NCBI GenBank assembly: GCA_025594325.1
Contig: JANHCV010000007.1
Location: forward strand, 1,860,001-1,924,000
Source: Blastocladiella emersonii ATCC 22665
Taxonomy: Eukaryota; Fungi; Blastocladiomycota
Reading direction: 5' to 3'
DNA length: 64,000 nucleotides
Within the stretch, counting starts at the first letter, position 1. Every line of letters starts with the position of its first letter. The notes under the pieces are model-generated. The model made no database searches and had not been told where the DNA came from. It saw only the letters and a list, made by a program, of their open reading frames with translations. Of this stretch, positions 24,764 to 56,956 are shown one piece after another. A program made the translations under genes and the position numbers.

Positions 24764-26443
24764 TCAAACGCCACGGACCCACTCGGCCGTGCGCGCGACA
24801 CTCCACCCGCGGCGGTAACCGATCTGGACGCGCTTCTCGAACTCGCCCGCCGACAGCCGCGTCGTGTGGTTGCCGAGCGCGTCGAACACGTCGGCGCTGT
24901 ACTCGAGCGGCGAGTACAGGTCCTCGATCTTGGGCTTGACGTCCTCGCGCTCGTCGTCGCTCGACATGGTCAGGTCCACCACCTCGATCACCTTGCCCGA
25001 CGCCACCTGGTTCGGATGCTGCTGCTGCGGCAGAGTCGGCGCCGGCGGTGCCGCGGCGGGCTCATTGGGAGCCAAACGGGGTGGTGTCGGGGGCGGGGAT
25101 GGCGAGGGATCCCTGGACGCGGAAACGATGCGGCGCTGAGGAGCCACGGTGCCGGTCGTCCGCCTCGCCGTGTGCCGCGACTTGCGGCGCGGCTTGGGGG
25201 GCGCGGCAAGCACTTCCGAGTCAAAGTCCTGCTCGAAGCTGTACACCGGCGTGGGAGCAGTAAACCGGCGCCGCGGCGCGACTGGTTCGAAAGCGGGTAG
25301 CGGGGGCTCCTCGACCGGTGCCGCGGCAGCAGATGCGGCAGCCGCAGCAGCCACTGCAGCCGAGGGACGGCGACCGCGCGGGACCGAATCGGCCGGTGCG
25401 TTGCGGCGCTGCCGCTTGGCCGCGCGGCCGGCGACAAACGGCTCCTCGTCGACCGGGTTCGGCGCGCCGCGGGGCCGCTTGGCCGCCATAGCGCGCGGCG
25501 TGCGGAACTTGATGAGCTCGTTGAGCGCCTCCTCGTCGGAGCCGTCCGTCATATCGGCGGCGATCCGTGCCACGTCGACGTTGTTCCCGTCAAACAGCAG
25601 CACCGCGTTCATCGTGTCGGGGGCGGCGCGGACCGTGCACTCGGCGGGGATCTGGAACGCGCCGGGCGGGCGCAAGCCCGCGCACAGGCCAATGTACTCG
25701 AGGATGCGCTTCTCGAGCGCGCGCTTGAACGCGCCGCCCGCCTCGAGCCCGAACCCGAGCTCCGGCTCAATATAGTTAACCGGGTTGAACCACGCCAGAC
25801 GCAGCACGCCCGGGTGGTCGACGCGCACCGTGTACAGCCGGACTAAGACTTCTTGCTTGGCGAAAAGCTTCATGACCGCGTCGGCGAGCAGCGCCAGTGC
25901 ATCGCGCCGCGGAATCTCGGCCGGCGCTGCGTGCTTCTTGAGGTGCTGCCACAGCGCGATCCGGACCAGTGTGCAGAGGTTGAGCTGCTCGAGCGTCTCG
26001 CACCGGTGAATCTTGGGCTTGCGGCCAGGCTGGTGCGCATCGTCATCTTCATCGGATTCGGACCCGGATGCATCGGAATCGGACCCCCACGGAGGCGACG
26101 GGGACGACGAGCGAGAGCGGGGCGGCGTGTCGACCGACGAAAGCGGAGACGCGGGCGACTGCGGCGAAGGAGGGCCCGAGCGAAAGTCTTGCGAGCTCGA
26201 ATCCGCAGCCGCACTCGGCGAAGGCAATGCTGACGTAGTAGCGAGCGCGGCGAGCGCGGCAAGGGCTGCGCTGGCACTGGCCGACGAAGAGCGACGGCGC
26301 CGCTGCTCCTGCGGTTCGTCAATCGAAGCAGGCGAGCCGTCGTCGGTATCGCTCGGGATTGTATGCACAAGGGGCGAGGCGGGAATCTCGCTGCTGCGCG
26401 AGGACGAGCGTTTGGTGCGAGTTGCAGTGGGTCGTCCGCTCAT
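24764..26443 (-). CDS. Tandem-array family member 1 (unassigned central domain, SIM, C-terminal GW module)
   Basis: MSGRPTATRT; CETLEQLNLC; AFQIPAECTVRAAP; VIEVVDLTMSSDDERE; YSADVFDALG...YRRGWSVARTAEWVRGV. Central domain is ~30 aa shorter than in its siblings. Confidence 0.8.
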   Translation of the reverse strand: MSGRPTATRTKRSSSRSSEIPASPLVHTIPSDTDDGSPASIDEPQEQRRRRSSSASASAALAALAALATTSALPSPSAAADSSSQDFRSGPPSPQSPASPLSSVDTPPRSRSSSPSPPWGSDSDASGSESDEDDDAHQPGRKPKIHRCETLEQLNLCTLVRIALWQHLKKHAAPAEIPRRDALALLADAVMKLFAKQEVLVRLYTVRVDHPGVLRLAWFNPVNYIEPELGFGLEAGGAFKRALEKRILEYIGLCAGLRPPGAFQIPAECTVRAAPDTMNAVLLFDGNNVDVARIAADMTDGSDEEALNELIKFRTPRAMAAKRPRGAPNPVDEEPFVAGRAAKRQRRNAPADSVPRGRRPSAAVAAAAAASAAAAPVEEPPLPAFEPVAPRRRFTAPTPVYSFEQDFDSEVLAAPPKPRRKSRHTARRTTGTVAPQRRIVSASRDPSPSPPPTPPRLAPNEPAAAPPAPTLPQQQHPNQVASGKVIEVVDLTMSSDDEREDVKPKIEDLYSPLEYSADVFDALGNHTTRLSAGEFEKRVQIGYRRGWSVARTAEWVRGV

Positions 26444-26577
26444 GGTTGCTGCTGCGATTGCATTCGATTCACATTCATGGAGAGCTGAGGAAGTCAGCGG
26501 GGCCCGGCCGGTCAACAAGCAATTTCAGGGGTTCCCAGTGAGCAAGGCCGGTGCCACACATGCGCACCGCAACACAT

Positions 26578-26604
26578 CACATGATAATGCGTCGCGTCTC
26601 GCAC
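26578..26604 (-). promoter_or_regulatory. Bipartite motif upstream of member 1 (+ strand CACATGATA-N8-CGTCTCGCAC)
   Basis: One mismatch to the consensus, 8-nt spacer, ~135 bp upstream of the ATG. Confidence 0.6.
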
Positions 26605-27326
26605 CCTCGGTTGCCGCGCGATGCATGCTCGCACTACTCGAAATGTCTATGCAATGGTCTCCACTATGATAGAACTGACTTTAAGTATCGTCTCAAGCTT
26701 GTGTGCTGCAGGCCGGCACAGTCGACGGCGTGATCTCTGTCCAAGGAAAACTCTTTCGTCGGCTTGATGACAGTTCGTGACAGTTCTCTTCCTGTGATAT
26801 GATGGCAGTTCAGGACTGTCGTCGTCCTGCGAGACGCCGCAGTGACTTCAGTGGGCGTGCCACAGCGGCCACGAGCAACAGTCATTGTGACTGTAAAACT
26901 CATGGAAGCTTACCTGAAAGGGCCTTTTTCATCAACGAAGCATCTATTTTCTTTGTCCGCTCTGTGATTCCAGTAAGTACGTGCCGGTTGATGGGCGGGT
27001 GATGGTCGTCGTGACACGCTGGTCGCAACACGGGTCGGCTGCCTTTTGACTTGGATATCTCACGATTTCCTGGACTCCTTTCAAATTTACTATGACTATG
27101 AGGTTCAATGACCTCGAATCTCGGCTCAGGACATTACGGAAAGCTGGTATTCTTCGAGTTCGCTTGCATTCGCTGTGTCGCGCTCCGCGACGCGTCGATG
27201 GAGCAGCTTCACCCTCTCCGACCGACCTCTCGCTACCATGACCGCCGATAAGCTCAAAAAGTCCGCCTAGAGTGGTTGGTATCAGAAAAGGAATAAATTA
27301 ATACATCTCGGTTGTGGTACACGAGC

Positions 27327-29033
27327 TCAAACTCCGCGGATCCACTCGGCCGTCCGCTCGACACTCCATCCGCGTCGGAACGCAATCTGGATACGCTTCT
27401 CGAAATCGCCCGTCGACAGCCGCGTCGTGTGGTTCCCGAGCGCATCGAACACGTCGGCGCTGAACTCGAGCGCCGCGTCCGCGCCCTCGACCTTGACCTT
27501 GACGACGACGGGCGGCGGGGCGTCGCTGCTGCTGTCCGTGAACTGGTTGGGTTCTGGGCTGTACTGCTGGTACGATGGTACCGTTTCCGGTGCAGCGGAC
27601 GACGCGCGCGAGGTGGATGCCGACTGCGGTCGCGGGCGCGGGCGCGGAGGTACTGGCGCTGCTGCACGCGTGGACGACGAGGCGACCGTACGCGGCGCTG
27701 GCACCTCGACTGGACGCCGAGACGCACGGCGTGGTGGCGGAGGAGCAGCAGCAGCGAAATCGGAAGAGTCGAGGTCGAAGATGGACTCGGGCGCGGCGGA
27801 CCGGCGTCGGCGCCGCTTGGTCGCGGGCGGCAGCGGCGGGCGGCCGGGGCGAAAGTCGGGGTCGTTGTCGTCGTCAATGACGTACGCGGCCGCCACAGCG
27901 CAGACGCGGGAGCGTTCCTCGGCGGTCAGCGCAGCATAGACGGGGAGCTCCTCCTTGACGCGGACTGGGCGGGCATCGCGGGCGTCGTCAGCGGCAGCGT
28001 CCTCGTAGTAGTAGCGCTTGCGCGACGCCTGGACCTTGAGCAGCTCGCCGACCGTGTCGCCGTCGGTCTCGTCGAGCACGGCGGGCTTGACGCGCAGGGC
28101 GTCGAGCTCGCAGCTGTACTCGAAGACGCCGAGCACGCTCTCGGGCGCGTTGCGGACCGTCAGGTCGGCGGGGATGTGGAAGATGCACGGCTCGAACATC
28201 TCGGCGCACGCGTGGATGTAGTGGTCGATCTTGGCGTCGAGGGCGGCGGCAAACTGGGCCGCGCGCCAGCGCAGGACGCCGAGCGTGGACTCGAGGAACT
28301 TTTCCGGCATGCGCCACTTGAGCTGCAGCGTGCCCGGGTAGTCGACGCGCGTCGTGTACATTTTCACCTGCACGCCGGGCAGCTCGAGGAGCGCCGTGAC
28401 CGCGTCGCTCAGCAGCCGGCGCGCGCGGTTGTAGTCGACGGGCGAGCGCAGGCCCCAGTACTTGCCGTCCACGTCCTGCACGGGGAACGACGCCTCGCGG
28501 TACGCCTTGTCGGCGTCGGGCCCCTTCTCGCGCAGCGCACGCAGGTGGTGCCACACGGCGACGCGGAGCAGCGTGTAGAAGTTGAGGTCCTCGACCGTCT
28601 CGCAGCACAGCCCGTCGTACGACGTCTCGGGCGACTCGTCGTCCTCCTCGTTGGGCGACCCGGGTTCGGCGGGCGCGTCTGCTCTTGACTCGGGTCTCGA
28701 GTCCGAGTCGGGCGAGGAAGTGCGGCCGTTCGGCGGCGTGCTGATTGACGACAGCGACGAAGCCGGCGAAGCCGATTCGGGCGAGGCGGGCACCGTCGCG
28801 GGCGCCGAGGTGGTGCGCGAGGTATCCGGCGGCGTCGGGGGCGACACCGTCGTTGCGAGGGCAGCGGGTACAGACGACGCGCGAAGCGGCTCCATGTTCA
28901 GGGAGAGGCCGCGGCCGAGGCCGTCGGGCGTGCGGGACCGCGGGCGGGTGGAGTCAAGGCCGGCGCTGTTGCGGGAAGCGGGACGAGGTGCGTGGCGGAG
29001 TTTGGTCCGCGTTGCAATAGGTCGCTCGACCAT
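27327..29033 (-). CDS. Tandem-array family member 2
   Basis: 568 aa; MVERPIATRT; CETVEDLNF; LRVKPAVLDETDG; FSADVFDALG...FRRGWSVERTAEWIRGV; no VIDLT SIM. Confidence 0.85.
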   Translation of the reverse strand: MVERPIATRTKLRHAPRPASRNSAGLDSTRPRSRTPDGLGRGLSLNMEPLRASSVPAALATTVSPPTPPDTSRTTSAPATVPASPESASPASSLSSISTPPNGRTSSPDSDSRPESRADAPAEPGSPNEEDDESPETSYDGLCCETVEDLNFYTLLRVAVWHHLRALREKGPDADKAYREASFPVQDVDGKYWGLRSPVDYNRARRLLSDAVTALLELPGVQVKMYTTRVDYPGTLQLKWRMPEKFLESTLGVLRWRAAQFAAALDAKIDHYIHACAEMFEPCIFHIPADLTVRNAPESVLGVFEYSCELDALRVKPAVLDETDGDTVGELLKVQASRKRYYYEDAAADDARDARPVRVKEELPVYAALTAEERSRVCAVAAAYVIDDDNDPDFRPGRPPLPPATKRRRRRSAAPESIFDLDSSDFAAAAPPPPRRASRRPVEVPAPRTVASSSTRAAAPVPPRPRPRPQSASTSRASSAAPETVPSYQQYSPEPNQFTDSSSDAPPPVVVKVKVEGADAALEFSADVFDALGNHTTRLSTGDFEKRIQIAFRRGWSVERTAEWIRGV

Positions 29034-29147
29034 GATTCATGAGCTGCGTAGGATGGGGTGTGCGGGAAGGGAGGGAGAGCGCGCCCCGGTTGCCAAGTCA
29101 AGTCGCGCACGCGCGCGCTGGCTGAAACGCGGGCCCGGCCGTCGAGT

Positions 29148-29174
29148 CACGCCTTTTCGCGACGCGTCTCGCGC
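29148..29174 (-). promoter_or_regulatory. Degenerate bipartite motif upstream of member 2 (+ strand CACGCCTTT-N8-CGTCTCGCGC)
   Basis: Spacing is conserved; the E-box half is degenerate. Confidence 0.35.
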
Positions 29175-29239
29175 GCTCTCCTCCCCGTCGGCAATCAACC
29201 TTGCCCGGGAGAGAAACAGCTTCCAACCAGAATATAGCC

Positions 29240-29352
29240 GGATCGGATCTCGCCTAGCCGCTCGGCCGTCCGCGACGCGATCCTGCCGCGGTAGCAGTCC
29301 GCGACGCGATCCTGCCGCGGTAGCGCGATCCGGACGCGCTCCTCGAACTTAC
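29240..29352 (-). pseudogene. Isolated relic of the family C-terminal module, with a 28-bp tandem duplication (29268-29295, 29297-29324)
   Basis: Minus strand reads KFEERVRIA...YRGRIASRTAERL, compared with consensus EFEKRVRIAYRRGWSVARTAEW. Confidence 0.5.
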
Positions 29353-29425
29353 ACTTTGGTACTCGCGTCGCGGCGGCACGGCTGCGACAGGATCAGACAG
29401 GGAAACGGGAGAGGAAACAGTTGCA

Positions 29426-30856
29426 TCAATCGAAAGGGACGCACTCACGTGAGAGAAGACCGCTCGTGCATGCGGATCCACTTGGCCGTCCGCGCCGCGC
29501 TCCATCCGCGGCGGCCGTCTTGACGTGGGTCACAAATTCGCCATCCGGGACCCGCTGCGCGTGCTCGCCGAGCGCGTCAAACACGTCTGCACTGAACTCC
29601 TTCTCGGGGTCCAGGCCCTGGAGCACTTCGAGCTTGGGCTTGATGTCCTCGTCGTCGTCCGACATGGTCAGGTCGATGATCTCGGTCTGCTTGGCCTGTT
29701 GCGGACGCGCCTCGGGCTTCTTGATCCCACCAAGCGGTTCGTAGCCCGCGGCGCGGGACGGTCCCGAGTTGAGCTGCTGTGGCCGTGGTACCAATGGTGT
29801 CGCGGATCGCGGCCCGGGACTCGAACGTGAGGGCGAGTGTACGTCCTCGCGCGGGCCTTCTGCACCTGGTGTGCGCCGTGGCCGAAGTCGCTGGGGCATG
29901 AGTTCGGCCTCGGAATCGGATCCGTCGTCCACGTCCCGGCGATTCCGTTTCCGGGGCACGTTGGTCTGCAAGGGCTTGACGATGGATTCCGCGACCGTGT
30001 CGTCCTCGATATCCCCGTCGAGCGCGGCGGGCGCGACACGCAGCAAATGGGGATCGCCGCTGACCTCAAAGAGGGCCAAAATGTGGTCAGGAGCTTTGCG
30101 CACTCGGTTGATTGCTGGGATGCGGAAGACAGCGGGCTCGGCCATGTTGCAGCAAGCGCGGATGTACCAGTTTAGCTTGAAGTCAAGCACGGACGCGAAC
30201 TCGTTGGCCCGCCAGTCGCCACGGATTTTGAGAGTCTCGCTCATCTTCTCGTTGAGTTTCCGCATCACGGCCATGAGCACAGCGCTCTGGCTCTTGGAAT
30301 TTGCATTGACGTAAAGCTTGACGAGGGCACCCGATTCCTTGGGGAGCGCCATGATAGCATCACGGAGCAGCTTGCGCGCGCGAGCCAAGTCGGCGGGATC
30401 TGCCAGAACCCGCTGCCCGTCGTCGTCGACCTTGGTGGCGAACGACACCTCGCGGTACGCGCGGTCGGCGTCGGGGTCGCTCCTGAGTTGCTCCCCCACG
30501 GCGATGCGGAGTAAGCGACAAAAATTGGAGTCGTCGACCGTCCTGCAACGCTGGCCCGCCTTGGCGGTCCCGAGCAAGCCCAGGTCGGGGAGCGTGCGCT
30601 CCGCTTCCGATTCAGACCCGGAGCTCGGCTTGGAAGCGGGCGGGGGCACGGAGCGCTCGATGGGGGAGGAGGGCAAGGAGCGCTCGGTGAGCGAGGAGGG
30701 CTGCGGTGGCGAGTCCGGGCTTCCGTCGCCGCCGCCGCCGGGGGAGCTCGGCGCAGCGGCACCGAGTTCGCTGCCAGCGTCGTCGTCGCTGGGCACGGCG
30801 GGCCCGGCGCTCAAGCGCCTAGTACGAGTTGCAGTAGGTTTCCCGGACGTTTTCAT
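29426..30856 (-). CDS. Tandem-array family member 3, frameshifted in the last helix
   Basis: MKTSGKPTATRT; central domain close to member 4; EIIDLTMSDDDED. About 4 bp are missing near 29512, which moves RRGWSAARTAKWIRM out of frame. Confidence 0.8.
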   Translation of the reverse strand: MKTSGKPTATRTRRLSAGPAVPSDDDAGSELGAAAPSSPGGGGDGSPDSPPQPSSLTERSLPSSPIERSVPPPASKPSSGSESEAERTLPDLGLLGTAKAGQRCRTVDDSNFCRLLRIAVGEQLRSDPDADRAYREVSFATKVDDDGQRVLADPADLARARKLLRDAIMALPKESGALVKLYVNANSKSQSAVLMAVMRKLNEKMSETLKIRGDWRANEFASVLDFKLNWYIRACCNMAEPAVFRIPAINRVRKAPDHILALFEVSGDPHLLRVAPAALDGDIEDDTVAESIVKPLQTNVPRKRNRRDVDDGSDSEAELMPQRLRPRRTPGAEGPREDVHSPSRSSPGPRSATPLVPRPQQLNSGPSRAAGYEPLGGIKKPEARPQQAKQTEIIDLTMSDDDEDIKPKLEVLQGLDPEKEFSADVFDALGEHAQRVPDGEFVTHVKTAAADGARRGRPSGSACTSGLLSRECVPFD

Positions 30857-30933
30857 ATGTTGCATACGCAAAGGTGAGGCGACGGGAGGAGCGAGGCCGA
30901 GCGCAGGGTGAGACAAACGAATTATGGCCGACC

Positions 30934-30960
30934 CACGTGATAAATCAACGCGTCTCGCAC
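30934..30960 (-). promoter_or_regulatory. Bipartite motif upstream of member 3 (+ strand CACGTGATA-N8-CGTCTCGCAC)
   Basis: Perfect match, ~80 bp upstream of the ATG. Confidence 0.65.
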
Positions 30961-31250
30961 TGTATCCGCAACGCGCCTCACACGCGAGTCTACTCTATCG
31001 AGAGCGACTTGCTCCAAAAATGATTCCGGATTGAAGGAACTATACATTTCGTAGGCGCGAACGCGGATGCTCTACTCGCAACGAAATGCGGCGTGGACGC
31101 TCCCTCAGTGCTCGTGACGATCCCACGCACCGACGCAAACACGAGGCACGATTAATGGAGTGCTCGAGAGAGTTACTTTCAGGAGGACTCGTGTTCGGAA
31201 ACAGTTGCGTGTATTAACAAGTACATTCATGCGCGACAGAACCGCTCGGC

Positions 31251-32546
31251 TCAGAGCATGCGGATCCACTCGGCCGTCCGAGCCTTGTCCCAGCCTCGGC
31301 GGAACGCCGTCTTGATGCGCTTCCCGAGCTCGCCCGGCGGGACCCGCTTCCGATCCTCGCCAAGCTCTTCAAACACGTCGGCGCTGAACTCGGTCTCGGG
31401 ATCAAGGCCGGGGAGCTTCTCGACCTCTGGCTTGACGTCCTCGTCGTCTGACGTGGTCAGATCAACGACCTCGGTCGCCTTGGTCTGCTGTGCATGCGTG
31501 CCGGGCCCCTCGGCCCCGCTGGTCGGCGTGCGGCGCACGGAACGGGATGGTCCCGCATCGAGCTGCTGCGGCCGCGGTGCTGCGAGTCGCGAACTGGGTG
31601 TAGAGCGAGAGGAAGCGGGCTGGCCAGCGCCCGGACCTGGGCCTGCACGTGCCGCGTGCCGGGGCCGGAGGCGCCGTGTCACCGAGTCGGCCTCGGCACC
31701 GTCCTTGGGCTCGTCGCTCGTGTCCTGGCGCGTCCGTTTCCGTTTCCCGGACACACCCTTTTGCTGGGCCTTGACGAGATCGGCGACCACGTCTTCATCG
31801 TCCCCGTCAAGGACAGCGGGCGCGACGCGCAGCGAGTGGAGGTCGTCGCTGGTGACCTCGAAGACGCCAAGAATCTGCTCCGGCGCCTGACGCACCCGAT
31901 GATGCGCGGGGATGCGGAACGCGCAAGGCTCGGCCATGGTGCAGCAAGCGCGGATGTACCAGTCGAGCTTGGAATCAAGCACTGCCGCAGACTCGTCGGC
32001 CAGCCAGTCGCCGCACACGTTGAGAATCTGGCCCATCTTTTCGCCGAACTTCATCTTCACGAGAAGAAGCGTCGAGTGGCGGTTCGGATTGCCCTCGGCG
32101 TACATTCTGACATGTCCTGCACCAATTTCCTCGACGAGCGCCATGAGAGCATCACGGAGCAGCTGGCGCGCGCGAGCCAAGTCGGCGGGATCTGCGAGCA
32201 CGCGCTGCCCGTTCTCGTCGACCTTGGTGGCGAATGACGCCTCGCGGAACACGCGGTCGGCGTCGGGGTCGTTTTCGAGTTGATGCCACGCTGCGACTCG
32301 GAGCACGAGAGAAAAATTGATATCCTCGAGTGTCGCACAGGCCTGGTTCCCGGCCCCGATCTCGCGCGAGCCCAAGTCGGGCAGATCGCGCGCCGTCTCG
32401 GATCCAGGCTCGGATTTCGGCGGCAAGTCGAGGTCAGGTGCGTCGCCTTCGTCGCTCGGCGAGGTCAGCGCGGCGCCGTCGTCGCGCGGGTCGGTGGGGA
32501 CGGCGCTCACGCGCCTAGTGCGAGTTGCGGTAGGTTTCGTGGACAT
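31251..32546 (-). CDS. Tandem-array family member 4
   Basis: 431 aa; MSTKPTATRT; GKRKRTR; EVVDLTTSDDEDVKPE; AFRRGWDKARTAEWIRML. Confidence 0.85.
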   Translation of the reverse strand: MSTKPTATRTRRVSAVPTDPRDDGAALTSPSDEGDAPDLDLPPKSEPGSETARDLPDLGSREIGAGNQACATLEDINFSLVLRVAAWHQLENDPDADRVFREASFATKVDENGQRVLADPADLARARQLLRDALMALVEEIGAGHVRMYAEGNPNRHSTLLLVKMKFGEKMGQILNVCGDWLADESAAVLDSKLDWYIRACCTMAEPCAFRIPAHHRVRQAPEQILGVFEVTSDDLHSLRVAPAVLDGDDEDVVADLVKAQQKGVSGKRKRTRQDTSDEPKDGAEADSVTRRLRPRHAARAGPGPGAGQPASSRSTPSSRLAAPRPQQLDAGPSRSVRRTPTSGAEGPGTHAQQTKATEVVDLTTSDDEDVKPEVEKLPGLDPETEFSADVFEELGEDRKRVPPGELGKRIKTAFRRGWDKARTAEWIRML

Positions 32547-32674
32547 TTTTCATACGATTCATGCGCTAAAGTGGGGCGGCAGGGAGGGGGAGAGGCAAAA
32601 CGCTCGCTTGGGCGGCGGTGCCGCGGCGACGCCACAAGCGCAGGGCGTGACAACATGAACTCCTGAACTCGGTT

Positions 32675-32701
32675 CACGTGATAAACTGATGCGTCTCGCA
32701 C
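32675..32701 (-). promoter_or_regulatory. Bipartite motif upstream of member 4
   Basis: Perfect CACGTGATA-N8-CGTCTCGCAC on the + strand, ~130 bp upstream of the ATG. Confidence 0.65.
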
Positions 32702-32843
32702 TGCTTCGGCGTCGAGCCCGAAGCCTGTGGCCGCCCTGCGAGTACCGCTCGCACCCGATTCACTCACCAATGCCGCCGAGCAGTTTGTTAGCAAAACAAG
32801 CGTGTATAGAAGCGCAACATCAAGGCAACAAACTCTTGCCCAC

Positions 32844-34409
32844 TCACATGCGGCGAAGCCACTCGGCCGTGCGCGCGACGGTCCACCCGCGGCGGAACGC
32901 GGTCTGGATGCTCTCGTAGAACTCGCCCGACGGCAGTCTGGGCTTGTGCGTGCCGAGCGCCTCGAACACGTCGGCGTTGAACTCGACGTTTGACGCGCGC
33001 CGCTCGATCTTGATCTTGACGTCCTTGGGCTCGTCGTCGTCGCTCGACATGGTCAAGTCGATGACCGCCGTCGGGCGCTCGTTCGGCGCCGAGCGAGCGG
33101 CGACGCGCGGAACGGGCAGCACCGCGGCCGCGGCTTGGTCAACGAGCGCCGCGGGCTGGGTCGAGGCCGGGCGAGGGGACGGCGAGCGAGGGCGAGGAGT
33201 TGGTGGTTCTAGGCGAGGGGATGGTGGCTGAGGGGGAGGGGATGGTGACCGAGGGCGAGGAGCTGGTGGTTGAAGGCGAGGAGCCGGCGGTTGCGGGGGA
33301 GGAAACGGTGGCTGCGTGCGTGGAGCCGGTGGTTGAAGGCTTGGCGACGGTGGTTGCGGGCGAGGAGACGGCGGTCGAGCCGGCAAGCGCGAGGGCGTGA
33401 GCACACGCGAAGCGCTGGGCGATTCGGAAAGCGAGATCGATGAGTCCGCGCGCGGCGCTGCGCCAATCGAACGCCGGATGCGGCGCACAGGCGGCGGCGG
33501 CGGCGGTGTGCTCTCCGCAACCTCTGGGGCAGGCTCGTCCATCTCGTCGTAGTTGCGCTTGATCGACGTGTGCTGCTTCGTAATCAAGTCGGCGATCGTC
33601 GCGCCGTCCTCCTCGTCCAAGACGGCGGGAGCGACGCGCAGCGCGGCGGATGCGGGGCAGTACTCGAAGACGCCGAAAAAGAGCTCGGGAGCGCTGCGCA
33701 CCGACATGCCGGCGGGGATGCGAAAGAGGCTGGGCGCGTCCATGTTGAGGCACGCGTCGACGTACTGATCGAGCGTCTGCTTGAGCGCCGTGGCAAAGAG
33801 AGACGAGCGCAGGTGCTGCAGGCCAATGAGCTTCGCCATGTTGGTATGCGGAAGCATCGGAATGAGCTGCAGCATCGACGGGGTCACGCTGCGATTTATG
33901 TAAAGCTTGATGTGCTGGCCCATGTTAAGGATCAGCGGCATGAGAGCGTCGCTGAGGAGCTGCCGAGCGCGAGCAGCATCGGCGGGATGCGTGAACGATC
34001 GCTTGTTGTTCTCGCCGGTCTGGACGGGGAACGCGGCGTCGTAGTACGCGCGCTCGTCGTCGACGCTGTCCGCGCGCAGAGTCCGAAGGTGGCTGAACAC
34101 GGCGACGCGGACCAGGAGACAAAAATTAAGATTGTCGACCGACTCGCAGCGCACGCCGTTCTGCGGGGTCGCGCCGGGCGCCGGCGGCAACGACCTTGGT
34201 AGCGAAGTTGATCTAGGCGAGTAGGACGAGTGGGTCGACGACGGAGAGGCGGAATCCGAGGCGTTTCCTGGCGGCGAGATCGACTGCGAATTGGCAGCAG
34301 AGCGACCAAGCGTGGAGGTGCTGCGGCCGCGGCCGCGGCCGCGGCCAGAGGACCCAGATTGCGTGGTGCTGCGTGTTCGTGTCCGCATCGCGATTGGTTC
34401 CTCGGGCAT
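32844..34409 (-). CDS. Tandem-array family member 5, with ~10 heptad Pro/Ser repeats
   Basis: 521 aa; CESVDNLNF; LRVAPAVLDEEDG; PPSPRPQ-type repeats; AVIDLTMSSDDDE; VKIKIE; AFRRGWTVARTAEWLRRM. Confidence 0.85.
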   Translation of the reverse strand: MPEEPIAMRTRTRSTTQSGSSGRGRGRGRSTSTLGRSAANSQSISPPGNASDSASPSSTHSSYSPRSTSLPRSLPPAPGATPQNGVRCESVDNLNFCLLVRVAVFSHLRTLRADSVDDERAYYDAAFPVQTGENNKRSFTHPADAARARQLLSDALMPLILNMGQHIKLYINRSVTPSMLQLIPMLPHTNMAKLIGLQHLRSSLFATALKQTLDQYVDACLNMDAPSLFRIPAGMSVRSAPELFFGVFEYCPASAALRVAPAVLDEEDGATIADLITKQHTSIKRNYDEMDEPAPEVAESTPPPPPPVRRIRRSIGAAPRADSSISLSESPSASRVLTPSRLPARPPSPRPQPPSPSLQPPAPRTQPPFPPPQPPAPRLQPPAPRPRSPSPPPQPPSPRLEPPTPRPRSPSPRPASTQPAALVDQAAAAVLPVPRVAARSAPNERPTAVIDLTMSSDDDEPKDVKIKIERRASNVEFNADVFEALGTHKPRLPSGEFYESIQTAFRRGWTVARTAEWLRRM

Positions 34410-34561: not shown

Positions 34562-35530
34562 TCATTTCGGCTCATTTAAACGGAGCCCCGTGGGCCTGCT
34601 GTTAGCTTTGGGCAACCCGGACAGCGTGGCGTGTGAGAGCGGCGGCCAACACGAAGAAACTCGACGTGGGCGGAGACTGGCCACATGTAAAACCCGCTCA
34701 CGTGATATCGCAACACGTCTCGCACTGTCTCGCGCCCCGCGAGTCGCCGATCGCGCGACGACCCCACGCTCAAAAGGCAAACACAGCGCGTTGATATACA
34801 CAATGTTGATACAAAACAGCCCAATTCCCGCGCGACGCTCCACCCGCGGAATGCACTTGAAGAACTTGCCGGCGGGGAGCCCGGTCGCGTGCGACCCGAG
34901 CGCGTCGAACACGTCGGCGTTGAAATCGGCCATCGTAGCGAGCTCGTTGATCTTGGGCTTGACGTCCTTGGGCTCATCGTCGTCGCTGGACATGGTCAGG
35001 TCGATGACGGGGGTCTTGATGGTCGACTGCGGCGCTGGCGTCGGCGGCGGCGGACGCGGAACTCGCGGAGGCGGTGGTTGCAGCTGCTGGACCGGCGCCG
35101 TCTCGGACTCCGTCTCGTTGGGCGTCGAGCGAGTAGGCATCGCTGCGAGCAGCGAGTTCGGGACCGCGGGCTGCTCGGCACCAGTCGTGTTTGGGGCAGG
35201 AAAGCGCGGTGGTACCCCTGTTTGCAGACGCGACGGCAAGGGCAAGGGCGAGGCTGCAAGGCGAGGTGCAGGCGAAGCGGGAAGCAAGGGCGAGGGCGGC
35301 GGGGGCGAAGCCGCGCGCAAGGGTTGCGGCGGTGAAGCCGCGAGTAAATGTCGGGGTGGCGAAACCGCGAGGAACGGTGGCGGCGGCGATGTCGCGAGCA
35401 AGGGTCGGGGCGGCGAAGCTGCAGCCGCAGCCGCACCCAACGGCCGAAGCGGCGGTCGCGGAGCGAACGTGTTTAGTAAAACGTGCCTATCATGGTAGAG
35501 CCGTTTTGAACGGCGGAGCTCGTCACTCAA
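34562..35530 (-). pseudogene. Tandem-array family member 6: no central domain, 9-aa repeats, SIM kept, C-terminal module frameshifted
   Basis: PVIDLTMSDDDEPKDVKPK and FNADVFDALGSH...GKFFK, after which AFRGWSVAR lies in another frame. Confidence 0.65.
34699..34725 (-). promoter_or_regulatory. Bipartite motif upstream of member 5
   Basis: Perfect CACGTGATA-N8-CGTCTCGCAC on the + strand, ~290 bp upstream of the member 5 ATG and inside the out-of-frame tail of member 6. Confidence 0.6.
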
Positions 35531-35903
35531 CAGAACGCGAGCGGCGGGGCGAGAGCGGCCGCAGTCGACGAGGTGCGTGGCGGCTGCGGCGAGGGGGTGT
35601 CGAACAGCTCAGGTTCGACCTTACGCCGGATCCGGCGCGCAGGCGCGGGTGCGCGTCGCGATTGGTTCGTAATACATGGTTCAGAAGCAAGCTGCATGGC
35701 GGGCGAGGTCGGGGGAGCGAGCGTTGGAGCGGGGTGGAGCGGAAAGCGCGAGCGCCTGCCAAAACCAACGCGTGGGTCGACCGTGGGCCCGCCCGCCGGT
35801 CGCGTTTGCCGCGCTCCCGCCGCGCCCTCGCCGCTGCCTGATGCTTCTGCTGATCCCATGAATCTCAATGGACATATAACCCAACGCTCTCATCACTGCG
35901 GCC

Positions 35904-37661
35904 TCACACCCCGCGGATCCACGCGGCCGCGTGCGACACCGTCCACGCGCGGCCGAACGCGACCCGGACGCGCCGCTCGAACTCGCCCGGCGGCAGCCGC
36001 CCCGCGTGGTAGCCGACCTCGTCGAACACGCTGGCGCTGTACTGGAGCATCAGGTCCTCGACCACCTCCGGGGGCTTGACGTCCTCAGGCTCGTCGTCGG
36101 ACTTGGTCAGGTCGACGACGGTGGCCTGCTTCTTGGGCTGCTGCGGCCCCGTCGCCGTCGCCTCGTGCTCGTTGGGCACCGAGCGGGGCACATCGTGTGC
36201 GGCGAGGACCGGCGGCGGGATGACTTCGGGCAGCTCAGCACCGGGCACAGGTGGGACAGGAAGCGGCGAGAACGACGTGGTGGGCGTGGACACGGGCGGG
36301 CTGGATCGCGTGGGCAACGGGGAGGGAGACGGTGATGGCGAGCGAGTGCGAGGCTGTGCCACGTGCAGGTTCCAGTTGGTCTTGACGAGGACCTGACTCA
36401 CACGCAGCGTCGACGGGCGGGTCTTGAGGTCCACGCCGGCCTGGTCCGTGGCCTTGGCGCGGGTGCACTCGCGCGGGGCAGGCTCCTGCTCGACCGTGCT
36501 CGCGAGCTCGCCGTCCTCGGCCTCGGTGCGGCTCCGCTTGCGCGAGGCGTGCTCCTGCTCGACCGCGTTGGCGATCTCGCGGTCCTCAGGGGCCAGGTTG
36601 GACTCGTCGCGGCTCCGCTCGGGCGAGGCGTGCTCCTCGGTGCGGCTCCGCTTACGCGACGCGCGCTGCTGCGCGACCGCATCGGCGAGCTCGTGGTCCT
36701 TTGAGTCCACGCCGGCCTCGTCGCCGCACCGCTTCTTCCGCGACGACGGCGCGTGGCCCAGATCGACCATGCCAGCGAGCCGTGTGCTGTCGGACTCGTC
36801 GAGCACGCCGGGCGCGACGCGCAGCGCGGTGCCGTCGGCGGTGCGCTCGAAGACGCCGCGGACATGGGCGGGCGCGCCGCGCACCTCGAACCCGTCGGGG
36901 ATGCGGAACATGCACGGCGCGAGCGCGCTGGTGCACGCCGCGAGGTACCGGTCGAGCTTGGCCTTGAGCGCCGGCATGAACTTGGCGTCGCGCCAGTCGC
37001 GCACACCTACGAGCCACCGGAGTTGGTTCCACGGCGACATGAAACCGAGCTGCAGCAGCGGCAGATGGTGGTCGGCGCGCTTCGCGTACATCTTGACGCG
37101 CAGCGGTGGGCCGGCGAGAAGCGCCATCACGGCGTCGATCAGCAGCTGGCGCGCGCGCGGCTGGTCGGCGAGGTGCCCGTCGTCCTGGATCGTGAACGAC
37201 GCGGCGCGGTACTCGCGGTCGCCGTCGCGGTCGTTGCGCTCGCGCAGCGCCGCGAGGTGCCGCCACACGGCGACGCGGAGCAGCACGCAGAAGTTGAGCT
37301 CGTCGACCGACGCGCACGCCACGCCCTTGGGCGCCGCGACGTCGGGATCGAGCTGCGGACCGTGGTCGGGCGCAGGAGACGGCACCGACGAGAGCTCCGA
37401 GTCGGATGGGTCGGGCTCCAGCGACGTGTAGCCGGGCGGGCGCTTGGAGCGCGGGCACGCGCCCGAGCGTCGGCGCGGCGGCTTACTGGCGGGCGGCTCG
37501 GGCGAGATGGGCGGGGTGGGGACTGCGGTAGGATGCGCCGGCGTTGGGGTTGAGGGCACCGCGGTCGGCGCTGGTCCAGCGGGGCCGCCGCCGCTGTCGA
37601 GCGAGGCGCGGCGCGAGGATCGGCGCAGTTTGGTGCGAGTCGCGGTGGGTTGATCGGGCAT
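35904..37661 (-). CDS. Tandem-array family member 7
   Basis: 585 aa; MPDQPTATRT; CASVDELNF; LRVAPGVLDESD; repeated ASRKRSRTE; TVVDLTKSDDE; AFGRAWTVSHAAAWIRGV. Confidence 0.85.
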   Translation of the reverse strand: MPDQPTATRTKLRRSSRRASLDSGGGPAGPAPTAVPSTPTPAHPTAVPTPPISPEPPASKPPRRRSGACPRSKRPPGYTSLEPDPSDSELSSVPSPAPDHGPQLDPDVAAPKGVACASVDELNFCVLLRVAVWRHLAALRERNDRDGDREYRAASFTIQDDGHLADQPRARQLLIDAVMALLAGPPLRVKMYAKRADHHLPLLQLGFMSPWNQLRWLVGVRDWRDAKFMPALKAKLDRYLAACTSALAPCMFRIPDGFEVRGAPAHVRGVFERTADGTALRVAPGVLDESDSTRLAGMVDLGHAPSSRKKRCGDEAGVDSKDHELADAVAQQRASRKRSRTEEHASPERSRDESNLAPEDREIANAVEQEHASRKRSRTEAEDGELASTVEQEPAPRECTRAKATDQAGVDLKTRPSTLRVSQVLVKTNWNLHVAQPRTRSPSPSPSPLPTRSSPPVSTPTTSFSPLPVPPVPGAELPEVIPPPVLAAHDVPRSVPNEHEATATGPQQPKKQATVVDLTKSDDEPEDVKPPEVVEDLMLQYSASVFDEVGYHAGRLPPGEFERRVRVAFGRAWTVSHAAAWIRGV

Positions 37662-37865
37662 GGTTCATGCGAGCCGGAGGGTCGAGAGGTCATTGAGAAG
37701 GGGAGGGAGGAAGCGAGTCCCTCGAGCTGGCCGTGTTCGCGTTCCCCCGTGGGAGCAGCCAACGCGTCAAACGCGTCCGATCACCGACCGCCACCGCGCC
37801 CTGATGGCTGCCCTGATCCCAACCGTTCATGATGAGATGGTATATACAGTAATGGTACAAAGGCC

Positions 37866-39476
37866 TCACATACCGCCCATCCACGCGACCGTGCGCTCCA
37901 CGGTCCACCCGCGTCGGTACGCGATCACGATGCGCTTGTCGAACTCGCCCGCCGACAGCCGCGCCGTGTGCGGGCCGAGCGCCTCGAACACGTCGGCGCT
38001 GAACTCGAGCGCCGCGTCCGAGTCGTCGACCTTGGGCTGGACGTTCTCGCGCTTGTTGGCCGCAGCCGAGGCGAACGCGACGATGGCGTTGGACTGCACG
38101 GGGCGCTGCGGCGGCGGCGGCGCCCTGGTCTCGTTGGGCACCGAGCGAGGAGCACCGCGCGGGGCCGCCTCAGTCGACACCAAACCCGAACCATGACGGA
38201 GCGGCAGCGGCGGAGGGAGCGGCGGGAGGGGCGGCAGGATCGGCAGCGTCACGACGGGCGTACGCGTGGACGGCGGCGGCGTCGGGACGACATGCATCGC
38301 GACCGCAGCCCTGCGCCGAACCGGACGCGCGGGCACCGGGGTGAACTCGCCCTCGTCGCCGTTCTCGTCGTCGGACGCCGCGTCCACCGTCGCGGTGCGC
38401 TTGCGCTTGTGCACGATGCGCTTGCAGAGCATCGACCCGACCACGCCGGCGTCGGTCTCGGCAAGGACGGCGGGCGCAACGCGCAGGATGCCGCGTTCGC
38501 GGTCGATGTCAAACACGCCGTGGATGCCGCCCGGCGCGGCGTGCACCTCGCAGTCGAAGGGGATGTGGAAGATGCACGGCGGGTCCATGCCGGCGCACGC
38601 GCGGACGTACTCGTCGAGCTTACGGTCGAGCGCCGCGGCGAGGTGGTGCGAGGCCGCGTCGCGGACGCCGACGAGCTTGGCGAGGTTGCTGCCGGGCAGC
38701 ATGCGGTGGAGCGACAGCATGCCCCCGTGGTCGGACCGCATCGTGTACAGCCGCACGCGCGCCTCCGGGTCGCCGATGAAGGCCATGATCGCGTCACCGA
38801 GCAGCTTGCGCGCGCGAGCCGCGTCGACGGGATCGGCCACGACGCGGCGGTTGGCCTCGTCGAGGTGGACGGGGAACGCCGCGTCGCGGTACGCGCGGTA
38901 CGCGCGCTCGGCGTCGGCGCCGCGCTCGCGCAGCGACCGCAGATGGCGTAGCACCGCGATGCGGACCATCACGCAGAAGTTGAGGTCGTCGTGCGACGCG
39001 CAGTGCACCGTGTTGGGCGCCGACTCCTCCTCGGGCTGCTCGGCCTCGTGCGATTGCTCCAACTCCTGCCCTCGCTCTGACGCCTCTGCCTGATCCGATC
39101 CCTGCACAGGCTCGGGCTCCTGCTCCGGCTCCAGCTCCGCCTCGAGCTCCGGTTCCGCCTCGGGCGCAAACTGAAGCGACGGGTGGATGGGCGAAGCGGG
39201 GAACGTCGGCTGCGGGAGCATGGGCGCGCCGAAGAGGGAGTGGGCCGACGCGGGCGGCGAGGCGAGGAAGGCGGCAACGGCCGCGCCGTCGTCGAACTGC
39301 GGCCACGGGAGCGAGGGCGTCATGGACGTCGAGCTCTTCTGCGTGTTCGGGGCGAGGCCGGGCGCGGGGGCGGGTAGCGGCCGGGGAGGACCGAGCGCGT
39401 CGCGGATCGTCGAGTGATGGACGGGGACCACGTCAGGGAGCGACGCTGCGCGTGCTGCGAGCGGGCGGTCGGCCAT
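37866..39476 (-). CDS. Tandem-array family member 8
   Basis: Likely start MADRPLAAR at 39476; CASHDDLNF; HKRKR; FSADVFEALG...YRRGWTVERTVAWM; no SIM. Confidence 0.82.
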   Translation of the reverse strand: MADRPLAARAASLPDVVPVHHSTIRDALGPPRPLPAPAPGLAPNTQKSSTSMTPSLPWPQFDDGAAVAAFLASPPASAHSLFGAPMLPQPTFPASPIHPSLQFAPEAEPELEAELEPEQEPEPVQGSDQAEASERGQELEQSHEAEQPEEESAPNTVHCASHDDLNFCVMVRIAVLRHLRSLRERGADAERAYRAYRDAAFPVHLDEANRRVVADPVDAARARKLLGDAIMAFIGDPEARVRLYTMRSDHGGMLSLHRMLPGSNLAKLVGVRDAASHHLAAALDRKLDEYVRACAGMDPPCIFHIPFDCEVHAAPGGIHGVFDIDRERGILRVAPAVLAETDAGVVGSMLCKRIVHKRKRTATVDAASDDENGDEGEFTPVPARPVRRRAAVAMHVVPTPPPSTRTPVVTLPILPPLPPLPPPLPLRHGSGLVSTEAAPRGAPRSVPNETRAPPPPQRPVQSNAIVAFASAAANKRENVQPKVDDSDAALEFSADVFEALGPHTARLSAGEFDKRIVIAYRRGWTVERTVAWMGGM

Positions 39477-39716
39477 GATGCATGGGGTGGGGTTGGGTGC
39501 TGGGTGCGAAGAGGTGGGGGAGGGGAGATGAAGTGGCCGAGCGCGGGAGCGGCGGCGCCGGTTGGGGGGAACGCGGAAAACCACGCACCCACGTGGGAAA
39601 AGCAACGCGTCGATCGCGCGTTGGGCGGGGGGCCGATGCATCGACCGACGAAAGCTTTGAGGTTCAACCAACGAGCGATTAATTATACATACACGTAAAA
39701 CTTTCTCCTCATTGCT

Positions 39717-41066
39717 CTACGTGCCGCCGAGCCACTCGACCGTCCGCGACACGGTCCACCCGCGGCGGAAAGCGATCTGCACGCGTTTCTCAAACTCGCC
39801 CGCCGACAGCCGCGCCGACTGCGTGCCGAGCGCCTCGAACACGTCGGCACTGAACTCGAGGGCCGCGTTTGCATCGTCAATCGCCCGACTCTGCAGCGGG
39901 ACCTGCGCTGCCATGGACTCGTTGGGCAATGCACGAGGATCCCCGCGCGAGTCGGCGATCGACTGACCCACGCGCGACACCGAAGTGACCGCAGGGCGGG
40001 TAGGTGATGAAAGCGGCGGCCGAGTCGGCGTGGGCGACGGCGGAAGCCGCTGAACCACGCGCGGCGGGTCGGCGTCGACCTTGCGCCGGACCTGGCGAGC
40101 AGGCGACGGCCCGTCGTCGCCGTCACCGCCTTCGTCCTCAGACCTCGCACCCGCCTCGTCGCGGTCCCGCTTCCGCGGTACGTGCACGCGCAGCAGGTTG
40201 CCCATGACGTCGCCGTCGGCCTCGTCCAGCACAGCGGGCGCGACGCGCAGCACCTTGAGGTCCGGGCAGTACGCGAACACGTGCTGAATAGCGCGCGGCG
40301 ATGAAAAGAGCGCGTTCTCGGCGGGGATGCGGAACTGCGACGGCCCATCGACGTTGGCACACGCGTCGACGTACTCGGCGAGCTTACGGTCGAGCGCGGC
40401 CGCGAGTCCCGCGGACCGCAGGTCGCGCACGCCGGCCAGCTTGGCGACCTGCTTGCCCGGCGTCATGCGGCGCAGCGTCAGCAGCGACGGCCGGTCGACG
40501 CGCGTCGTGCACAGCAGGATGCGCGCCGCCGGGTCGTGCGCGAGCGCCAGGACCGCGTCGCTGAGCAGCCGGCACGCGCGGTTGCGGTCGCCGGCGCTCG
40601 ACAGGATGCGCTGGTTGCCCGCGACGCGGAGCACCGGGAACGAGGCGTCGCGGTACGCGCGATCGGCATCGCCGTCACGAGCGCGGAGCAAGCGCAGGTG
40701 GCGCAGCACCGCGACGCGGATCAGGATGGTGAAGTTGGTCTCGTCAACGGGCACCGCGTTGGGGACCGCGGTCTCTGGCTGAGGCTGCCGGAGCTCGAAC
40801 TGACGCGAGGTCCACGGAACCGGAGGCAAGTCCGGCGGCGGCGAGGCAACGGACGAGAGCGACGACACGGGCGACGCGAGCGCCGTCGTAGTCGCAGTCA
40901 CCGGTCTCGGAGATGCGGGCGCCGTGGACGGGCCGGGCTGCGTGGCCGGGGTGAGACCGTGTTCAGGCGCGGCAGAGTCGGGCGCGTCGATGGCGTCGCG
41001 GGGACGAGGTGCGGAAGGGGCAGCTTGGCGCGGCCGTGAGCGTGTCGCTGTCGGCCGTTCAGACAT
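39717..41066 (-). CDS. Tandem-array family member 9
   Basis: 449 aa; MSERPTATRS; LRVAPAVLDEADG; PRKRDR; AFRRGWTVSRTVEWL; no SIM. Confidence 0.85.
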   Translation of the reverse strand: MSERPTATRSRPRQAAPSAPRPRDAIDAPDSAAPEHGLTPATQPGPSTAPASPRPVTATTTALASPVSSLSSVASPPPDLPPVPWTSRQFELRQPQPETAVPNAVPVDETNFTILIRVAVLRHLRLLRARDGDADRAYRDASFPVLRVAGNQRILSSAGDRNRACRLLSDAVLALAHDPAARILLCTTRVDRPSLLTLRRMTPGKQVAKLAGVRDLRSAGLAAALDRKLAEYVDACANVDGPSQFRIPAENALFSSPRAIQHVFAYCPDLKVLRVAPAVLDEADGDVMGNLLRVHVPRKRDRDEAGARSEDEGGDGDDGPSPARQVRRKVDADPPRVVQRLPPSPTPTRPPLSSPTRPAVTSVSRVGQSIADSRGDPRALPNESMAAQVPLQSRAIDDANAALEFSADVFEALGTQSARLSAGEFEKRVQIAFRRGWTVSRTVEWLGGT

Positions 41067-41266
41067 GTTTCATGAGATAGTGAGCAGGACAGCGGGGAGG
41101 GAGAGCGGGAGTGCTTCGACGAAAGACGGTCTTGAAGCCTCAGCGACCACGGTCGCGGCCCACATGGCCGACCAGCACCATGAGAGTGACTCCAGGGCGC
41201 ACGCGGGAACGGGGGTATACCGGCCGTATATGAATGATATCTCTAGCGTACACAATCAGCCGCGCA

Positions 41267-43035
41267 TCACTCGATCCCGGCCATGACGCGCGTGAACGCG
41301 ACAATCTCGTCGAGCGACCACCCGTCCTGCAGGCCGGCCTTGACGCAGTCCTTGATGTGCGGCAGGACGCGAGGGTCGCGGCCGAGCGCGCTCCACACGC
41401 GCGCCGCCGTCGCCGTGTGCGCCGCGCTGAGACCCGACGGCGTGGTCGCACGCGACGACGTGTCGCGAGCGGGGGCGGGCGAGTGGAACGCGGAGGGAAG
41501 CGCGGGCGAGCTCGACGCCGAACGTGGCCGCGTCTCCTCGGCAGCGAGGGCGGCGGCACGAGCGCTTGCCCTCGAGTCGGGCCGCGGCCGCTTGGCGACG
41601 TGGTCGGCATCGCCCGCTGCCGCCGGGGCCAGGTGCACGTCAACCTCCGCCGGGGTGTGCGGCCGCTTGTGCGGCGAGCTGCGCGGCGGCGCTTCCATCT
41701 CGAGGTTGGCGTCGAGCTCGCCCACCTCCTCGACCGCTGCCGCTTGGCCCACACCAGCGTCCACCGCCATCTCCGCGTCAGCGTCCATCTCCTCGGCATA
41801 GGCAGCCTCCTCGTCCGACTCGGCGTGCTGCGCCGACGTGGACGAGCTCGAGTCGTCGGTCGAGGACGACTCTATGGTGCTGGACCGTAGCTGCGGCGGC
41901 GCGGGTAGCGGCAGCGGGACCGAGCGCTGGGTGAGCGGGATCGAGATGAGAATGTCCTTGGCGCGGCGAGGCTGCGTCTGCGCCTGCGACGATGCGGGTG
42001 CCGGTGCGGGAGGTGCCGCAGCCGCATCCGAGGTGCGCGAACCGCGAGACGCAGCGACGGGGAAGGGGTCGGTGAGGGCGAGCTGGTCGAGCGGGAAGAA
42101 CTTGAGCGCGTCGCCGTCGCGCACAAGGGCGGGCGGGACGAAGGCGGGCGCGTTGACGGTGCGCAGGCCGTTGGCGAGGCGGAACCCGTCGCCGCCATTG
42201 CCGAGCGCGATGCACTCGGTCAGGTACTCATCGATCTGGTCGTCGAGCTGGCTCCCCCAGTCCCAGTGCGACGTCTTGACGCCGAGCGCCTGCTCGAGGA
42301 CCGTGCGCGGTGGGCGCGTGGTCAGCCGCGTGCTCAGGTCCTTGTTCGGGCCGGCGTACAGCGACACGCTCAGCTCCATGATCGCGTCGACGGACCGCCG
42401 CAGCAGCGAGCGCAGCATCACGCGGTCCTCGGGTGAGAGATCGAGCGCGCCGCCGTCGCCGTCGCCATCGACCTTGCGCACGAGCGGGTACGCGTGGACC
42501 ATCTGGTCCTTGAGGGCGCGGTCGCTCGGGCGCGCCGGCACCGTCAGCCGCTTGTGCCGGACCGCGGTGAGCACGACCGCCTTGAAGTTGAGGTCGTACA
42601 GCGTCTGCCGCGCGCGGTCGGCCTCGGGGGTGCCGCCGGCCTGCGAGGCGGACGGCGGCGAGAGCTGCTGGTGCTGCGTGCTCGAGACGGGCAGCTGCGA
42701 GTTGGACGGCGTGGTGCGGTTGCTGGGCGGCATCACGAGGAAGGAGGCCTGCATCGTGGCCTGGTGGAGCCGCTGGCCTCGTTCGCCGCCGTGGCCGCGG
42801 GGCGCTTCGAGGGGCCGGGAGCGGCGGCAGCGAGCGGAACGGGGGCAGGCGCCGTGCCGGGGCCGTCGAGCAGGTCGTCGGACGCCTTTCGCGCGAAGAG
42901 GGCGGCGTGCGGGGTCGGGGACACGACGGGGGTGGCGAGGCCGCCGGAGCCAAACGCGTGGGCGCGGGCCGGCTGGGCGAGCGGGTAGAGCGGGACGCGC
43001 GGCGTCGATTGCGGCCGGTTCTTTTGGCTTTGCAT
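41267..43035 (-). CDS. Highly divergent family member 10; probable 1-bp frameshift near 42775 joining MQSQKN... (43035) to ...LHQATMQASF
   Basis: Remote matches to the family: TLYDLNFKAVVLTAV, LLRRSVDAIM, LEQALGV, LDDQIDEYLTEC, GFRLA...VNAP, and C-terminal VWSALG...AGLQDGWSLDEIVAF. Confidence 0.6.
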
Positions 43036-56838: not shown

Positions 56839-56956
56839 AGGCGCGAAATAATTGTTGTACCCGCATGCATGCTGTAATATACTGATTTGTCAAGTACTAT
56901 AATGTTATATAAGCGATTCTAGATGATTTGACGCGTCGCTGAGGTCAGAACGCATC

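Follow-up and report, generated by a model that had tools for sequence, protein, structure and literature searches.

A tandem family of intron-free genes in Blastocladiella emersonii with an unmatched predicted domain and SUMO-interaction-type motifs

Introduction

Ten consecutive open reading frames (ORFs) without introns, accompanied by one relic, lie head to tail on the minus strand at positions 24764–43378 of a 64-kb stretch (~1.860–1.924 Mb) of the 2.017-Mb contig JANHCV010000007.1 of Blastocladiella emersonii ATCC 22665 (assembly GCA_025594325.1). This stretch is referred to here as the window and all coordinates are positions within it. An earlier note on this DNA, made from the sequence alone, described an array of ~10 paralogues of an unassigned protein family, which it took to be fast-evolving, lineage-specific and nuclear. 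The locus raises the question of whether these ORFs are genes at all and, if so, what their proteins resemble, how the array arose and what it may do. The analysis presented here leaves us in little doubt that the family is real, constrained and lineage-restricted, with a predicted fold that has no match, and its short motifs suggest a possible role in SUMO-dependent nuclear biology.

Results

Ten paralogues share two conserved modules

All ten ORFs of the proposed array were recovered by ORF listing and translation, and could be aligned as full proteins and through separate profiles of a central domain and a C-terminal module. The shared architecture agrees with the one originally outlined: an N-terminal motif, M-x-x-(R/K/Q/E)-P-x-A-T-R-T (N-motif), is followed by an unalignable Ser/Pro-rich region predicted earlier as disordered, a domain of ~200 amino acids, a basic cluster, a variable linker and a C-terminal block of ~50 amino acids. 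A profile scan of the entire window, translated in six frames, located the central domain nine times, in copies 1–5 and 7–10 (numbered by ascending coordinate), with no further match elsewhere in the window. Hidden Markov model (HMM) scanning of the same six frames showed the C-terminal module to be intact in eight copies, whereas a frameshift interrupts it in copy 3 and it is truncated in copy 6. The motifs that had been quoted for the domain (DLNF, ARAR.LL.DA, LD.KLD.Y..AC, F.IP...VR.AP and LRVAPAVLDE.DG) are all present in the central-domain consensus, and repeat families at the DNA level show registers matching the array seen at the protein level. Neighbouring copies are 24–61% identical in amino acid sequence, their linkers being unalignable, and with a GC content of 59–75% across the window the array is not compositionally distinct from its surroundings.

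The description of the array as intronless holds in that each complete architecture is a single uninterrupted ORF, but this is not unusual, as about a quarter of the genes in the B. emersonii genome are single-exon (2,438 of 10,031, or 24%; PMC9730499).

The central domain has a confident model and no recognizable relative

AlphaFold2 modelling of the central domain alone, from an input of nine paralogues, predicted an alpha/beta structure with a predicted local distance difference test score (pLDDT) of 92.3 and a predicted template modelling score (pTM) of 0.89. In a model of full-length copy 4, order was confined to residues 67–260 and 383–430, the latter forming a three-helix bundle; most of each protein is disordered. 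The residues invariant among the domains (N11, A19, L67, L68, D70, A71, L125, Y132, C136, F145 and P157) look structural rather than catalytic. The pI of the domain ranges from 5.4 to 10.2 among the copies, an indication of diversifying surfaces.

Searches for relatives returned essentially the array itself. Pfam gave nothing for eight full proteins at E values up to 1, nor anything usable for eight C-terminal modules, and profile searches of PDB sequences matched neither module. When the domain profile was run exhaustively with hmmsearch over 1.84e9 cluster representatives, it retrieved the six public models of the array and one other match, P0007 (E 2e-4); this is a repetitive, bacterial-type protein of 1,757 amino acids matched over 50 residues and was rejected as spurious. 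Word-index queries of 5.8 billion clusters, using in turn the full protein, its domain and its C-terminal region, found array members only, and a single-protein query of metagenome contigs gave 76 pattern matches and no relatives. At the structural level, Foldseek comparison of the domain model with PDB, AFDB clusters, Swiss-Prot AFDB, BFVD and the ESM Atlas yielded only hits with E > 0.09 and TM scores < 0.4, and three VIA-align structure runs found no significant match. Feature matches in the ESM Atlas (scores of at most 0.55 and 0.37), among them influenza nucleoprotein and GCR1_C, were judged to be noise. The claim of an unmatched central domain thus survived profile, Pfam, PDB and Foldseek checks, none of which led to a characterized family, and that of lineage specificity likewise, as no relative outside the array emerged from the sequence or fold searches.

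The best structural matches of the domain, although weak, were winged-helix or 'kite' proteins such as MukE and, by analogy, Nse3-MAGE, which are also ~200 amino acids long. MAGE genes in mammals are an intronless, clustered and fast-diverging expansion, and the array could in principle be a very divergent member of this group (MukE, ScpB, Nse3-MAGE) whose partner would be an SMC/kleisin complex or E3 ligase, with a tandem expansion like that of the mammalian MAGE genes. However, neither the MAGE homology domain nor the MukE families gave a Pfam or PDB sequence match, and there was no significant fold match of the central domain to tandem winged helices; we consider this relationship very unlikely.

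The ORFs are protein-coding genes under purifying selection

Long ORFs are weak evidence for genes at 70% GC, and many ORFs of 150–450 amino acids overlap in other frames of the array DNA. The array could on this account be decaying duplicated DNA whose ORFs are long simply since stop codons are rare at such a composition, a reading that would also accommodate the two broken copies, Nei–Gojobori dN/dS values near 1 and the lack of expression data. Several observations speak against it. The composition is frame-specific, with GC at codon positions 1/2/3 of 0.70/0.44/0.89. Given the strong bias at third positions (GC3 0.89), the Nei–Gojobori estimate was set aside as a measure in favour of a codon model (GY94, GY+F3X4, with position-specific frequencies), which gave an omega of 0.24 for the central domain and 0.19 for the C-terminal module; fixing omega at 1 lowered the log likelihood by 110 and 28 units respectively. 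The dN/dS test that had been proposed for these copies therefore returned values of about 0.2 and not near 1.

Comparison of copies 3 and 4, the youngest pair (100% bootstrap), gave ratios of nonsynonymous to synonymous differences per site (pN/pS) of 0.52 for the domain, 0.45 around the SUMO-interacting motif (SIM) described below and 0.61 for the C-terminal module, against 0.93 for the linker, which locates the constraint in the folded parts and motifs while the linkers drift. The domain is moreover foldable at a pLDDT of 92, and blocks next to the start codons are conserved. That these are dead ORFs is accordingly a highly improbable explanation: the array ORFs are real protein-coding genes whose folded parts are under purifying selection. 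The portrayal of the family as fast-evolving needs qualifying in this light, since it fits the divergent copies, the unalignable linkers and the gene decay but not the clear purifying selection on the folded parts.

Short motifs resemble PIAS-type SUMO-interacting and nuclear localization signals

Six copies (1, 3, 4, 5, 6 and 7) carry [VI][VI]DLT followed by a Ser/Asp/Glu tract at the same relative place. The core is rare, with [VIL][VIL]DLT occurring only six times in ~122,000 six-frame residues of the window, each time at the SIM site of an array member. These putative SIMs are VVDLTMSSDDE in copy 1 (24950–24982), IIDLTMSDDDE in copy 3 (29648–29680), VVDLTTSDDE in copy 4 (31440–31469), VIDLTMSSDDDE in copy 5 (33030–33065), VVDLTKSDDE in copy 7 (36090–36119) and the motif match at 34973–35008 in copy 6, all on the minus strand; tails found directly after the core include MSSDDDE, MSDDDED, TSDDED and KSDDE. 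VIDLT is the SIM of PIAS1, and VDVIDLTIESS (residues 467–477) is the SUMO-binding peptide of PIAS2 (PMC4907222; PMC9071424). The hydrophobic core in the array copies is identical to these, and the acidic tail is likewise of CK2 type. The likeness to PIAS proteins is confined to the motif: the SAP, PINIT and SP-RING domains were not found by Pfam in eight members. SUMO binding by the six copies is suggested by this motif.

Downstream of the SIM site lies a [VI]K.K/E.E element, which in three copies conforms strictly to psi-K-x-E: copy 2 retains VKVKVE, copy 4 continues with VKPE and copy 5 with IKIE. A basic K/R cluster resembling a nuclear localization signal (NLS) directly follows the domain in copies 1–5 and 7–9, and together with the PIAS-type SIM it would point to a nuclear location. 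The linkers of copies 1, 5, 6, 7, 8 and 9 share the motif R-[SA]-x-P-N-E, found in copies 5–9 at 33078–33092, 35114–35128, 36168–36182, 38130–38144 and 39918–39932. A resemblance of the N-motif to a histone H3 tail mimic, a D-box or a kinase-docking site was considered and dropped as no consistent match was obtained.

The C-terminal module is a conserved bundle of near-neutral charge

No part of the proteins is better conserved than the C-terminal module (62% mean column identity). In the copy 4 model its helices span residues 383–401, 406–416 and 421–430 (pLDDT 82–90), that is, a first helix of 19 amino acids, a second of 11, a 4-residue turn containing Gly, and a third of 10. This geometry is compatible with a helix-turn-helix (HTH), and the pattern IAFRRGWSVERTAEWIR has what we take to be the Ala, turn Gly and hydrophobic/Ser/Thr spacing of classical motifs, a lead rather than a test. 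Together with the conservation of the module and the NLS-like clusters, this would allow the array to be a private transcription-factor family, with the C-terminal module as its DNA-binding HTH, the central domain as a partner- or ligand-binding regulator and the SIM as an accessory. Set against this, no HTH, Myb or homeodomain match was obtained in Pfam at E values up to 10 or among PDB sequences; structural matches of the module were generic three-helix bundles with Z scores of at most 5.4, CUE, UBA-like, KRAB and DNA-binding chains among them; and the module lacks the basic surface expected for DNA recognition, acidic and basic residues being equal in number (pI 5.6–8.6, net charge about zero). 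We regard the transcription-factor reading as unlikely, albeit with more in its favour than the winged-helix relationship. UBA and CUE domains are likewise three-helix bundles of ~45 amino acids, but neither they nor HTH proteins gave a family HMM match, and as the fold matches were not distinct from those to unrelated bundles, the module was assigned to none of the three.

State of the individual copies

The copies differ in their state of preservation: seven are apparently intact, counting copy 1, whose domain has lost an internal stretch; one is C-terminally damaged, one is dead and one is highly divergent, and a relic lies between copies 2 and 3. Eight full or near-full copies had been counted, and these are present, with the corrections that copy 1 is without 28 domain residues and that copy 3 has a C-terminal frameshift. 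All copies, and the parts given for them, are on the minus strand.

Copy 1 (24764..26443; 559 amino acids) is identical to NCBI model P0004. Its N-motif RPTATRT is at 26414–26434, its central domain at 25475–26008, from which profile positions 27–54 (28 residues) have been lost internally, and its C-terminal module at 24767–24916. Copy 2 (27327..29033; 568 amino acids), which has no SIM, comprises an N-motif at 29004–29024, a central domain at 28014–28613 and a C-terminal module at 27330–27479. The relic, which had been reported at 29240, was found as a fragment of the C-terminal module (profile positions 18–36) at 29315..29371 with an E value of 0.013; it lies just downstream of copy 3 and adjoins a perfect 29-bp x2 tandem repeat at 29268–29324.

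Copy 3 (29426..30856; 476 amino acids) has its N-motif at 30821–30841 and its central domain at 29945–30556. Its C-terminal module is divided between two frames, with profile positions 2–37 at 29501–29608 and positions 35–49, which hold the last helix, in another frame at 29469–29513. Its sister, copy 4 (31251..32546), is the shortest complete member at 431 amino acids, with the central domain at 31734–32348 and the C-terminal module at 31254–31403. In copy 5 (32844..34409; 521 amino acids), where these parts are found at 33555–34157 and 32847–32996, the linker contains a 21 bp x10 repeat (33169–33379) encoding PPSPRPQ-like heptads.

Copy 6 (34562..35668), noted earlier as domain-less, indeed has no central domain. 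It retains a proline-rich repeat, STPNE and the SIM, and contains a tandem repeat of 27 bp x4.7 (35293–35419); its C-terminal module ends after profile position 30, and all that is left of the N-motif is a relic, MYYEPIATRTR (EPIATRT, 35648–35668), after which stop codons follow. Given this N-motif relic with its stops and the missing domain, copy 6 was identified as a pseudogene. Neither its state nor the frameshift in copy 3 is an assembly error, as contigs assembled independently from three DNA runs match 29300–35250 without differences; the runs probably derive from the source sample and were used for sequence verification only.

Copy 7 (35904..37661; 585 amino acids) has its central domain at 36729–37325 and its C-terminal module at 35907–36056, and units of 69/114 bp at 36450–36733 duplicate its RKRSRTE basic clusters. 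Copy 8 (37866..39476; 536 amino acids) has a degenerate N-motif, RPLAARA, and no SIM, with the two modules at 38403–39008 and 37869–38018. The C-terminal modules of copies 7 and 8 differ at a proportion of synonymous sites (pS) of 0.11, compared with 0.31 for their central domains; this could reflect local gene conversion, in a sample of only 50 codons. Copy 9 (39717..41066; 449 amino acids) is identical to NCBI model P0003, carries the N-motif RPTATRS and no SIM, and has its modules at 40167–40754 and 39720–39869.

Copy 10, the divergent terminal member, is given here as the stretch colinear with NCBI model P0005 (41267..42772), and its start is uncertain. It is without N-motif, NLS cluster or SIM, and its central domain (42038–42619) is only 24–31% identical to those of the other copies, in keeping with its earlier description as divergent. 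A profile built without copy 10 nevertheless recognized this domain (E 4e-5) but missed the C-terminal 52 amino acids (41270–41425), the likeness of which to the module is at the level of pattern only.

Start-proximal blocks are common to the copies

Sequence blocks within 26444..41156 on the minus strand, covering the 90 nt before each start, are common to the copies (families D15, D17 and D18). They include a CT-rich CTCCCTCCC tract ~30–50 nt upstream of each start codon and, immediately before the ATG, CATGAAnC, which in copies 2, 4, 5, 7, 8 and 9 places an upstream ATG out of frame at -7. Upstream ATGs open upstream ORFs of 1–61 codons and could be translational control or initiator elements; in copy 3 a 1-nt loss has turned the out-of-frame upstream ATG of its sisters into the start codon. 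The E-box-like palindrome CACGTG occurs 80–290 nt upstream of copies 3, 4, 5 and 8 (30934, 32675, 34546, 34699 and 39590), in three cases inside a conserved 44-nt block of family D18. Because the start-proximal blocks are common to the copies, they suggest a duplication unit that took in the promoter, and possible co-regulation of the copies. Rfam detected no RNA family in 20000–48000.

Public gene models, neighbouring genes and a nearby transposon

The public annotation treats the array differently. NCBI models fuse copies 8 and 7 (P0002, 1,063 amino acids), copies 3 and 2 (P0001, 786 amino acids, consisting of copy 2 and part of copy 3) and copies 6 and 5 (379 amino acids) by means of predicted introns, and the model of copy 4 is shortened to 265 amino acids. 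As every unit repeats the whole architecture and has an N-motif, a stop codon and a start-proximal block of its own, we interpret them as separate single-exon genes, and a practical gain of the analysis is that the fused and shortened models can be corrected.

Upstream of the array (43243–53000) are five annotated genes, the first encoding a multi-pass membrane protein of 698 amino acids and the others proteins of 306, 668, 449 and 504 amino acids; no Pfam family is recorded for any of them. On the downstream side the neighbours are conserved (UBX and Misato/Tubulin_3). A 2,456-bp element flanks the array region as two direct copies, 53 kb apart (1886–4341 and 55301–57755) and 99.8% identical, in which an ORF at 2346–2987 on the plus strand matches DDE_Tnp_4 (E 1.5e-12) and, weakly, HTH_Tnp_4. 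The element is a young DNA transposon of the PIF/Harbinger type.

Mobile DNA has therefore been active nearby, and this bears on a suggestion in the earlier note that the family may be of retro/viral origin. A mobile-element or viral ancestry, whether domesticated or still selfish, would explain the lack of introns and of cellular relatives. However, the array proteins gave no Pfam match to a domain of the reverse transcriptase, integrase, transposase or capsid kind; no predicted viral structure was matched; the units are not bordered by terminal inverted repeats or by long direct repeats; and the Harbinger ORFs have no similarity to the family profiles. GC content and codon bias are like those of the surroundings, and with 24% of host genes being single-exon an intronless gene is commonplace here. 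The suggestion thus found no support, and we think such an origin most improbable.

Discussion

Taken together, these observations describe a gene family that has expanded through tandem duplication and undergoes birth-and-death evolution. With regard to its function, we favour the interpretation that the family, restricted to this species, consists of nuclear adaptors that bind SUMO, for which the balance of probability is about even; the nuclear and SUMO component, which is read from motifs, stands at even or slightly below. According to this model the array proteins would be imported into the nucleus, where the conserved C-terminal bundle may anchor all members to one shared partner, either protein or DNA, and the SIM cassette may bring many of them to SUMOylated assemblies. 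Target recognition would then fall to the central domain, which is diversifying, and would differ from paralogue to paralogue. This would amount to a division of labour between an anchoring and a recognition module.

A number of points weigh against this interpretation. The SIM, NLS and SUMO sites are putative, being called from matches to short motifs, and four members are without a SIM, including the apparently intact copies 2, 8 and 9, so that SUMO binding is not a universal function of the family. The near-neutral charge of the C-terminal bundle argues against strong DNA binding, and only nine paralogues underlie the predicted fold of the central domain. With respect to selection, the Nei–Gojobori dN/dS is near 1, which we attribute to the GC3 bias, and divergence is close to saturation (tree length ~12 substitutions per codon), making omega imprecise. 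Finally, with regard to expression, no RNA run was listed, and a search of the text of the genome paper (PMC9730499) turned up neither RNA-seq nor a transcriptome.

The Sp100/Sp110/Sp140 clusters offer an analogy in that they too are clustered paralogues combining a SIM and NLS with long disorder, rapid divergence and gene loss. Their HSR/CARD, SAND, PHD and bromodomain were not found in the array by Pfam, and the analogy is functional speculation only. An extension of the adaptor model, and one that we hold to be improbable, is that the unseen fold serves nuclear surveillance or silencing that depends on SUMO, as a recognition module diversifying against transposons, for instance the nearby Harbinger element, or against viruses. 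Such a system would be the fungal counterpart of intrinsic defence of the PML-body or Smc5/6-MAGE type, its arms race being played out through tandem birth and death.

The central domain is a candidate for a fold not seen before and would repay structure determination, as nine paralogues yielded a confident model (pLDDT 92) and yet no structural or sequence match. Poorly sampled phyla do hold many orphan families, and the genes beside the array are also without Pfam domains. Blastocladiella is under development as a model for cell biology, and a private family of ten genes with SUMO-pathway and nuclear motifs may provide an entry to lineage-specific nuclear biology in an early-diverging fungus.

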